From positions 46,810,001 to 46,874,000 of the forward strand of contig OZ286471.1 of assembly GCA_965644265.1 (NCBI GenBank): 64,000 bases of DNA, in the 5' to 3' direction. A program made the position numbers and the translations under genes. Of the stretch, positions 60 through 63,426 are shown piece by piece. Under the pieces are notes generated by a model, which made no database searches, was not told where the DNA came from, and was given only the letters and a program-made list of their open reading frames with translations. The first letter of the stretch is position 1; each line of letters starts with the position of its first letter. The DNA is from Glycera tridactyla (Eukaryota).

Positions 60-290
60 CAATGGTATGTGATCAGCCCCGTCCAACCACACAGGCACCT
101 ATCACTACCACCAACAGTGACTGTTATATCCCAACATATGGTGGGACAGCTGGTAGCTCGATCTGTATTTTCCCATTCGAGTACAGAAATGTACGATACA
201 CTGGCTGTTCGACGGTGGATAATGGCGAGATACCTTGGTGCTACACCTCAGTATATTATAATACTGACCATCTCTGGGGAAATTGTTATG
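60..290 (+). CDS. Exon 1, FN2-like module, type A
   Basis: tttacag| ... |gtatgt; 231 nt; [10 protein letters not shown]...[22 protein letters not shown]...PWCYT...WGNCY. Confidence 0.92.

Positions 291-63426: not shown

Follow-up and report, generated by a model that had tools for sequence, protein, structure and literature searches.

Fibronectin type II (FN2) domains bind gelatin and collagen, or choline phospholipids, through an aromatic pocket, and the familiar proteins that contain them carry few copies: two in fibronectin, three each in MMP-2 and MMP-9, two in PDC-109/BSP, four in ELSPBP1, and one each in the mannose-receptor family, factor XII, and SEL1L. In vertebrate fibronectin, each FN2 module is encoded by one phase 1-1 exon. 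The 64-kb stretch of the Glycera tridactyla genome analyzed here (GCA_965644265.1, contig OZ286471.1, positions 46,810,001 to 46,874,000; hereafter the window) contains an array of 48 FN2 modules, each in an exon of its own. Judging from its splice phases and its cysteine register, the window probably lies inside a single, very long animal transcription unit that would encode an extracellular, multivalent FN2 chain.

The modules of the window share with vertebrate FN2 proteins the Pfam family, the four-Cys core, the aromatic pocket, and the fold. They differ in copy number, with 48 in the window as opposed to one to four in vertebrate proteins, and in carrying two extra cysteines each. Thr/Pro-rich tethers lie between the modules of the window, whereas the FN2 domains of vertebrate proteins are tightly packed or stand next to other domain types, and the window motif PWCYTS contrasts with vertebrate domains, in which WC is followed by Ser, Ala, or Gly and then by Thr.

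A second system with which the window can be compared is apolipoprotein(a), in which up to tens of small disulfide-knotted domains of the kringle superfamily are strung like beads on Thr/Pro-rich, O-glycosylated linkers, a layout that the window is predicted to share. In apolipoprotein(a), the tandem kringle IV domains are near-identical, recent copies, whereas the modules of the window are FN2 domains that are old and at most 79% identical; the window also differs in having one exon per module, and no protease domain is seen in it. A sequence-only reading of the window, made before the present analysis, had likened it to apolipoprotein(a) as beads on an O-glycosylated string. The Thr/Pro-rich linkers, which are of low predicted order, agree with this likeness, while the O-glycosylation is a prediction.

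The salmon louse is, like the species of the window, an invertebrate with many FN2 domains, and its 192 FN2 domains are distributed over 74 genes, mostly singly or together with trypsin (bioRxiv 10.1101/2021.03.15.435234); there they are dispersed, whereas here dozens stand in one array. The genome paper of the salmon louse also notes the older view that FN2 is specific to vertebrates (bioRxiv 10.1101/2021.03.15.435234), a view at odds with the many FN2 domains of this invertebrate.

Exon structure of the array

An FN2-core motif scan of both strands of the window gave 48 matches, all of them on the + strand. A module profile built from these 48 matches, and run filter-free against all stop-free stretches in six frames, recovered the same 48 with E values of 1e-16 to 1e-36, the next-best score being not below E 0.08. 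Exactly 4 nt past the last Cys codon of every core lies a phase-1 GT donor, and upstream of every core a pyrimidine tract leads to a phase-1 AG acceptor, which directly precedes a conserved x-x-x-Cys start. Acceptor choice relied on the motif and the polypyrimidine tract; in-frame alternatives exist for some acceptors but affect neither the phase nor the module count.

The spliced model extends on the + strand from 60 to 63426 and comprises 50 exons, all phase 1-1 and all with GT–AG signals (50/50), whose lengths are without exception multiples of three and range from 78 to 303 nt. Its 11,334 nt give 3,778 codons with zero stops; 48 exons encode one FN2 module each, and the two further exons encode linker only. 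The model reproduces exactly the 50 open phase 1-1 exons and approximately 3,778 codons of the sequence-only reading, whose count of at least 48 FN2-like modules agrees with the motif scan, the profile, and Pfam fn2, each of which gave 48. The same reading had seen no start or end of a gene within the 64 kb, and none was found in the spliced model or in searches of the intervals. The splice consensus of the model, AAG/GTATGT at donors and a T-rich tract followed by CAG/ at acceptors, is the usual one of animals, and the donor of exon 44 is the sole one with A as the last exon base.

The FN2 exons listed below are based on the motif scan, the module profile, the splice signals, and Pfam fn2. 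Coordinates are those of the window, C-x4-C stands for two cysteines with four residues between them, and the A-type modules are defined further below.

60–290, +: exon 1, FN2 module 1 (A-type)
766–993, +: exon 2, FN2 module 2
2192–2425, +: exon 3, FN2 module 3 (module folded by AlphaFold2)
3198–3428, +: exon 4, FN2 module 4 (A-type)
3860–4093, +: exon 5, FN2 module 5
4628–4861, +: exon 6, FN2 module 6
5219–5449, +: exon 7, FN2 module 7 (A-type)
5679–5912, +: exon 8, FN2 module 8
6362–6595, +: exon 9, FN2 module 9
7084–7293, +: exon 10, FN2 module 10 (A-type)
7733–7972, +: exon 11, FN2 module 11
10205–10450, +: exon 12, FN2 module 12
10695–10925, +: exon 13, FN2 module 13 (A-type)
11597–11830, +: exon 14, FN2 module 14; donor 15 nt before the N gap
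11846–12008, no strand: assembly gap (N run), inside intron 14 (11831–15192)
15193–15423, +: exon 15, FN2 module 15
16156–16386, +: exon 16, FN2 module 16 (A-type)
16874–17107, +: exon 17, FN2 module 17
17807–18037, +: exon 18, FN2 module 18 (A-type)
18816–19046, +: exon 19, FN2 module 19
19472–19702, +: exon 20, FN2 module 20
20493–20723, +: exon 21, FN2 module 21 (A-type)
21261–21506, +: exon 22, FN2 module 22
21964–22176, +: exon 23, FN2 module 23
24623–24850, +: exon 24, FN2 module 24 (diverged)
27688–27852, +: exon 25, FN2 module 25, without linker (adjacent Cys-Cys)
28570–28803, +: exon 26, FN2 module 26
29840–30127, +: exon 27, FN2 module 27, long non-mucin linker
31816–32118, +: exon 28, FN2 module 28, long non-mucin linker
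32583–32870, +: exon 29, FN2 module 29, long non-mucin linker
34564–34740, +: exon 30, FN2 module 30, one-residue linker
36057–36275, +: exon 31, FN2 module 31
36735–36953, +: exon 32, FN2 module 32
38950–39177, +: exon 33, FN2 module 33
40033–40263, +: exon 34, FN2 module 34
40938–41150, +: exon 35, FN2 module 35
41515–41763, +: exon 36, FN2 module 36
42154–42345, +: exon 37, FN2 module 37
42777–42983, +: exon 38, FN2 module 38
44011–44277, +: exon 39, FN2 module 39, 30-residue Thr-rich linker
44898–45197, +: exon 40, FN2 module 40, 40-residue Thr-rich linker
46870–47103, +: exon 41, FN2 module 41
49057–49284, +: exon 42, FN2 module 42
50978–51193, +: exon 43, linker only, 72 codons, Thr/Ser-rich, Cys near both ends; C-x4-C at both junctions
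53349–53555, +: exon 44, FN2 module 43; last exon base before the donor is A
59452–59529, +: exon 45, probable linker exon of 26 codons, contributing the closing Cys of module 43 (based on the C-x4-C rule, its splice signals, and Cys parity)
59946–60116, +: exon 46, FN2 module 44 (WCS-type; single pre-core Cys)
60663–60854, +: exon 47, FN2 module 45 (62% identity over 47 residues to a Montipora FN2 protein)
61627–61869, +: exon 48, FN2 module 46
62448–62636, +: exon 49, FN2 module 47
63190–63426, +: exon 50, FN2 module 48; followed by an intron that runs past the end of the window

Scans of the window for tRNA genes and Rfam families gave no matches, and no large transposon open reading frames (ORFs) were found in the introns. 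Intron 11 contains a 135-bp tandem repeat (9106–10178; 8 copies, 95% matches). Two intronic microsatellites, (GGT)n at 18218–18295 and (TGTC)n at 46027–46293, produce spurious long open frames at 18098–18364 and 45825–46641.

Domain identity, fold, and ligand pocket

The modules are true FN2 domains. Pfam fn2 (PF00040) was matched by 48/48 modules at E ≤ 0.001, with a best value of 7.9e-18, and no other family was matched; ten modules scored singly reached 35.8–56.7 bits, compared with a cut-off of 22.2, over profile positions 1–42, which is the full length. The module profile matched the FN2 domains of MMP-9, MMP-2, fibronectin, and PDC-109 at E 1e-44 to 1e-20, and also those of SEL1L, factor XII, and the mannose-receptor family, the whole set spanning E 1e-44 to 1e-09. 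Kringle identity was considered and rejected: there was no match to Pfam Kringle (PF00051) at E ≤ 1 in ten modules or at E ≤ 0.001 in all 48, the module profile gave no PDB kringle at E ≤ 0.01, and the modules were filed as FN2.

The AlphaFold2 model of module 3, for which the 48 modules served as the alignment, has a predicted local distance difference test score (pLDDT) of 85–92 over residues 21–78 and of about 50 over residues 1–20, which form the linker. In a Foldseek comparison of this model with the PDB, all 50 of the 50 matches listed were FN2-containing structures with a probability of 1.00, and nearly all of these best 50 superposed with a root-mean-square deviation of 1.5–2.3 Å over 55–62 columns.

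The four core cysteines are invariant in 48/48 modules, and little or no variation is seen in the F-P-F-x-Y motif, the Tyr before the second core Cys, the W-C pair, and the Trp of W-G-x-C, which bears out the earlier remark that the FPF-x-Y, WC, and WG aromatics are retained. By position, F41, W61, and W74 are invariant, F39, P40, Y43, and Y48 are present in at least 90% of modules, and Y68 is present in 40 of the 42 modules that have this position; the variable positions (42, 46, 47, 50, 53, 54, 57, 59, 66, 69, and 70) lie in surface loops. We take the conserved residues to correspond to Tyr30, Trp47, and Tyr54 of the PDC-109 ligand pocket (in the numbering of the present analysis) and, likewise, to the pocket of the gelatinase FN2 repeats.

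Cysteine register and the putative third disulfide

All FN2 exons follow one order, in which a Cys at about residue 4 is followed by a linker, a second Cys, a conserved (Trp/Tyr)-Ile-Pro-Thr-x-Gly-Gly-Thr strand, and the four-Cys core. Thr makes up 27% and Pro 13.5% of the linkers, whose median length is 17 residues. Across 48/49 splice junctions, the final Cys of one core and the leading Cys of the exon after it form a C-x4-C pair, spaced by exactly four residues. The rule fails only where the 26-codon exon meets exon 46; there, one linker is divided over the two exons. The number of cysteines in the spliced model is even (290), and the six Cys positions are all kept in 47/48 FN2 exons, with exon 46 keeping five.

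The registers of exons and domains are offset, in that the first Cys of each exon belongs with the previous module. The sequence-only reading had described one module per symmetric exon; the phase 1-1 symmetry stands, and what that description omitted is this assignment of the first Cys to the preceding module. In this register, no exon would be complete by itself, each depending on the one that follows it to finish its domain.

The cysteine pattern points, with reasonable rather than high confidence, to a six-Cys FN2 domain that would receive its sixth Cys from the next exon and form a kringle-like outer disulfide. C-x4-C is the spacing at the end of classical kringles. The layout of Cys, 6–16 residues, core, 3–4 residues, and Cys was found in 109 distinct units of 36 retrieved database proteins. 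In complete small proteins (P0128, P0054, and P0067), only one Cys precedes the core of the module next to the signal peptide, and C-x3-C closes the final module at the extreme C-terminus; these terminal modules fit a pairing of the first with the sixth Cys, and not a loop closed within the linker. When a profile of the six-Cys unit was compared with the PDB, the only matches after FN2 structures were kringles (tPA, apolipoprotein(a), and plasminogen), at sub-threshold E values of 0.4–4, and these alignments run through the last Cys of the profile and the C-terminal end of the kringle.

N-x-S/T sequons are scarce in the model, with 5 in 3,777 residues at 5.1% Asn and 21% Ser plus Thr, where a rough estimate from composition gives about 38. 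The scarcity may reflect avoidance of N-glycosylation, or merely fixed Asn positions.

Divergence, selection, and subfamilies

Among the 48 modules, the highest pairwise protein identity is 79%. Synonymous sites are saturated, which precludes dating based on synonymous substitution rates (dS), and only the proportions of synonymous (pS) and nonsynonymous (pN) differences were used, for modules 1–23; the mean pS is 0.81 and the mean pN is 0.25, and in 253/253 pairs pN is the smaller of the two. At the DNA level, the most similar of the exon pairs tested share 67–72% identity, while their flanking introns reach about 37–57% after forced alignment, which amounts to being unalignable. The modules are old paralogues, each individually kept by purifying selection.

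These values bear directly on whether the array might be a non-functional relic, or an artefact of assembling a shorter repeat, a notion to which the assembly gap and the two blocks of intronic tandem repeats in the region lend some color. The saturated synonymous sites, the deficit of pN relative to pS, and the unalignable introns argue against both a collapsed or inflated assembly repeat and a decaying array. Since 50/50 exons are, moreover, open and the cysteines are kept as described above, down to the five of exon 46, a relic or artefact is highly improbable.

The modules fall into recognizable types. A-type modules begin with Cys-(Tyr/Phe)-x-x-Thr-(Tyr/His)-Gly-Gly, and 6/8 of them end in Ser-Asn-Cys-(Trp/Leu). 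They occupy positions 1, 4, 7, 10, 13, and 16, and then 18 and 21, so that the three-exon period breaks at modules 17–18; this shift from 16 to 18 indicates that one B-type module was lost, or was never present, after module 16. The mean identity between modules at a lag of three is 67.7%, compared with about 64% at other lags. Modules 27–29 (29840–32870) have linkers of 37–42 residues that are not Thr-rich and a common Gly-Gly-(Tyr/Phe)-Gly-Tyr-Asn-Gly-Cys motif before the core, and represent a separate subfamily within the array. Modules 44–48 belong to a family of their own, the WCS type, in which mucin-like linkers are few or absent.

Relatives in databases and the literature

Searched with a profile, a set of 1.84 billion representative proteins yielded 6,271 FN2 proteins. 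The largest number of FN2 stretches in one protein was 32, in a transcript of the dinoflagellate Gymnodinium smaydae (4,529 residues), followed by 26 (two proteins), 22, 19 in Branchiostoma belcheri (KAI8499649.1), 17 in Sardina pilchardus (XP_062381919.1), and 16–17 in two shrimps, Macrobrachium and Palaemon. The long tandem FN2 arrays of these named organisms are uncharacterized, and no protein with as many FN2 units as the 48 of the window was found among the 1.84 billion representatives. The array is composed of a known domain, in a six-Cys form, and is longer than any predicted protein found. As predicted proteins with 16–32 FN2 stretches exist, it is only the length of the array, and not its architecture, that is unique. 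The sequence-only reading had recognized no gene of this architecture, which holds insofar as 48 modules exceed every protein found, and falls short with respect to the uncharacterized proteins of 16–32 stretches.

Some of the unnamed multi-FN2 proteins contain a six-Cys clamped unit, as in the window, and the multi-FN2 proteins as a group score about 50 bits per module against the module profile, compared with about 115 bits for the window's own modules. Since none of these multi-module proteins scores per module as the window's own do, the gene and its close orthologues are not present in the library as multi-module proteins. No publication describing a giant FN2 array turned up in a literature search.

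A word-indexed search with one exon ORF as the query returned seven single-exon ORFs that are 53–67% identical to the query and 72–77% identical to other modules of the window, with the same exon ends. Two of these ORFs were traced to contigs of the metagenome sample SAMN14350216 (ERZ23486739 / GCA_013332675.1), one contig of which carries two one-module exons separated by about 425 bp. These animal contigs carry one-module exons like those of the window but are only 1–3 kb long; they could derive from the orthologous gene of a relative, and the host animal may be a relative of the window's species. A further contig of this sample (P0145) carries two more diverged modules in one ORF with a core-C-x4-C-linker-C layout, which indicates that such modules are translated together.

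Two further observations concern more distant proteins. A protein of 1,552 residues (P0002), from a contig of 1.09 Mb (ENA ERZ22147071, contig ctg30976l; L001), has 16 FN2 stretches on Thr-rich linkers in one uninterrupted ORF of 4.6 kb. The six-Cys clamped unit recurs many times in the Gymnodinium smaydae transcript and in a metagenome protein of 3,772 residues (P0019, P0073), so that this variant is either not confined to animals or present there through contamination or transfer.

One gene, several genes, or exon cassettes

Frame and Cys register are continuous along the junctions of the 50-exon model, apart from the single exception to the C-x4-C rule described above, and no exon of the model opens with a Met and a signal peptide. 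If the window instead held a tandem cluster of several smaller FN2 genes, at least one gene boundary would fall within it, most likely in the 5.9-kb interval before module 44. Modules 44–48, as a distinct WCS-type family, are similar to small coral FN2 proteins (62% identity over 47 residues), only one Cys precedes the core in exon 46, as in the first modules of complete proteins, an ATG and a short hydrophobic run lie in frame just upstream of this exon, and database proteins with 2–6 FN2 domains are common. However, the intervals at 49.3–53.3 kb and 53.6–59.9 kb, the latter corresponding to 53556–59945, yielded no convincing candidate for a signal-peptide or terminal exon, and exon 46 has a strong phase-1 acceptor. 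The 26-codon exon at 59452–59529, moreover, has an x-x-Val-Cys-Gly start and good splice signals and restores both the C-x4-C spacing and the Cys parity, while every other junction conforms; continuity is therefore favored over a boundary before module 44, and a cluster of genes is unlikely. A boundary at 53.5–59.9 kb was accordingly rejected as a candidate, with the 26-codon linker exon accounting for the missing Cys. No repeats were found at 53.5–59.9 kb.

The same uniformity of phase and register allows for a repertoire of cassettes, in which each transcript would use a subset of exons, by skipping or by mutually exclusive choice, to give many shorter isoforms. As all exons are phase 1-1 and share the register of the closing Cys, any ordered subset would be in frame and correctly clamped, and the surface positions vary among modules while the pocket is constant. 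Against such a repertoire stand the wide range of exon lengths (78 to 303 nt) and the two exons that are linker only, and no 11-mer is common to more than 3/49 introns, which argues against a Dscam-type mutually exclusive system; selector or docking elements of the Dscam kind were sought and rejected, none being common to the introns. The two modules in one ORF of the relative are co-translated there, and predicted proteins with FN2 chains of 16–32 units exist. We regard a cassette repertoire as rather improbable, while the uniform phase and Cys register of the exons would make the array tolerant of ordinary exon skipping.

The N run at 11846–12008 starts 15 nt past the donor of exon 14 (11830/GT), within intron 14, and a six-frame profile search found no module fragment downstream of it. 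Exons 14 and 15 are both phase 1, C-x4-C is kept at their junction, and the three-exon period of the A-type modules (1, 4, 7, 10, 13, and 16) is uninterrupted over the gap. With the frame, the junction rule, and the period unbroken, the number of modules hidden in the gap is zero or a multiple of three. Just 3′ of the gap, also in intron 14, a (CGTC)n run is followed by a tandem repeat of 170–182 bp with approximately 7–8 copies and 78–83% matches (12482–14108).

Several points weigh against the reading of the window as part of a single long chain of six-Cys domains. The start and the end of the gene lie outside the window, the module families change along the array (exons 24–29 and 46–50), and gene boundaries could go unnoticed in the introns of 3.4 and 5.9 kb. 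The 26-codon exon before module 44 is probable by sequence logic only, and the libraries searched contain no spliced sequence in which several modules of this gene, or of a close orthologue, are joined. An AlphaFold2 model of a natural six-Cys unit, based on 108 homologues, has a pLDDT of 51–59 at both termini, where the clamp cysteines lie, and so gives the putative third disulfide no structural support. The pocket residues are common to collagen-binding and phosphorylcholine-binding FN2 domains, so that they do not separate the two ligand classes.

Proposed organization and significance

In the scheme proposed here, for which we infer one transcript, secretion, glycosylation, disulfide topology, and ligand alongside the observed exon structure, domain identity, fold, conservation, and purifying selection, the 50 consecutive phase 1-1 exons would encode one cysteine-rich extracellular chain of 48 FN2 domains on short Thr/Pro-rich tethers, which are probably O-glycosylated. 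The outer kringle-like disulfide of each domain would most likely be completed only once the next exon has been spliced on. With the FN2 aromatic pocket kept in every domain, the most likely role of the chain would be multivalent binding or cross-linking of some repetitive ligand outside the cell, with collagen-like or proline-rich chains and choline-type head groups as candidates; candidate settings are matrix, mucus, an adhesive, or a surface coat.

FN2 has long been regarded as a vertebrate module present in one to four copies, and here at least 48 occur in an invertebrate-type gene with every copy under selection, which points to an unstudied route to a very high-avidity extracellular binder or cross-linker. 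The six-Cys form with a kringle-type C-x4-C end, found in at least 36 other database proteins, offers a testable intermediate for the old question of the relationship between FN2 and kringle domains. Because the next exon completes each domain, the array is also a natural example of modular assembly from phase 1-1 exons, and, on a less probable reading in which the whole locus is one gene, the offset between exon and domain registers would let any ordered subset of exons be spliced into a correctly clamped chain, which would give isoforms of variable length and specificity.

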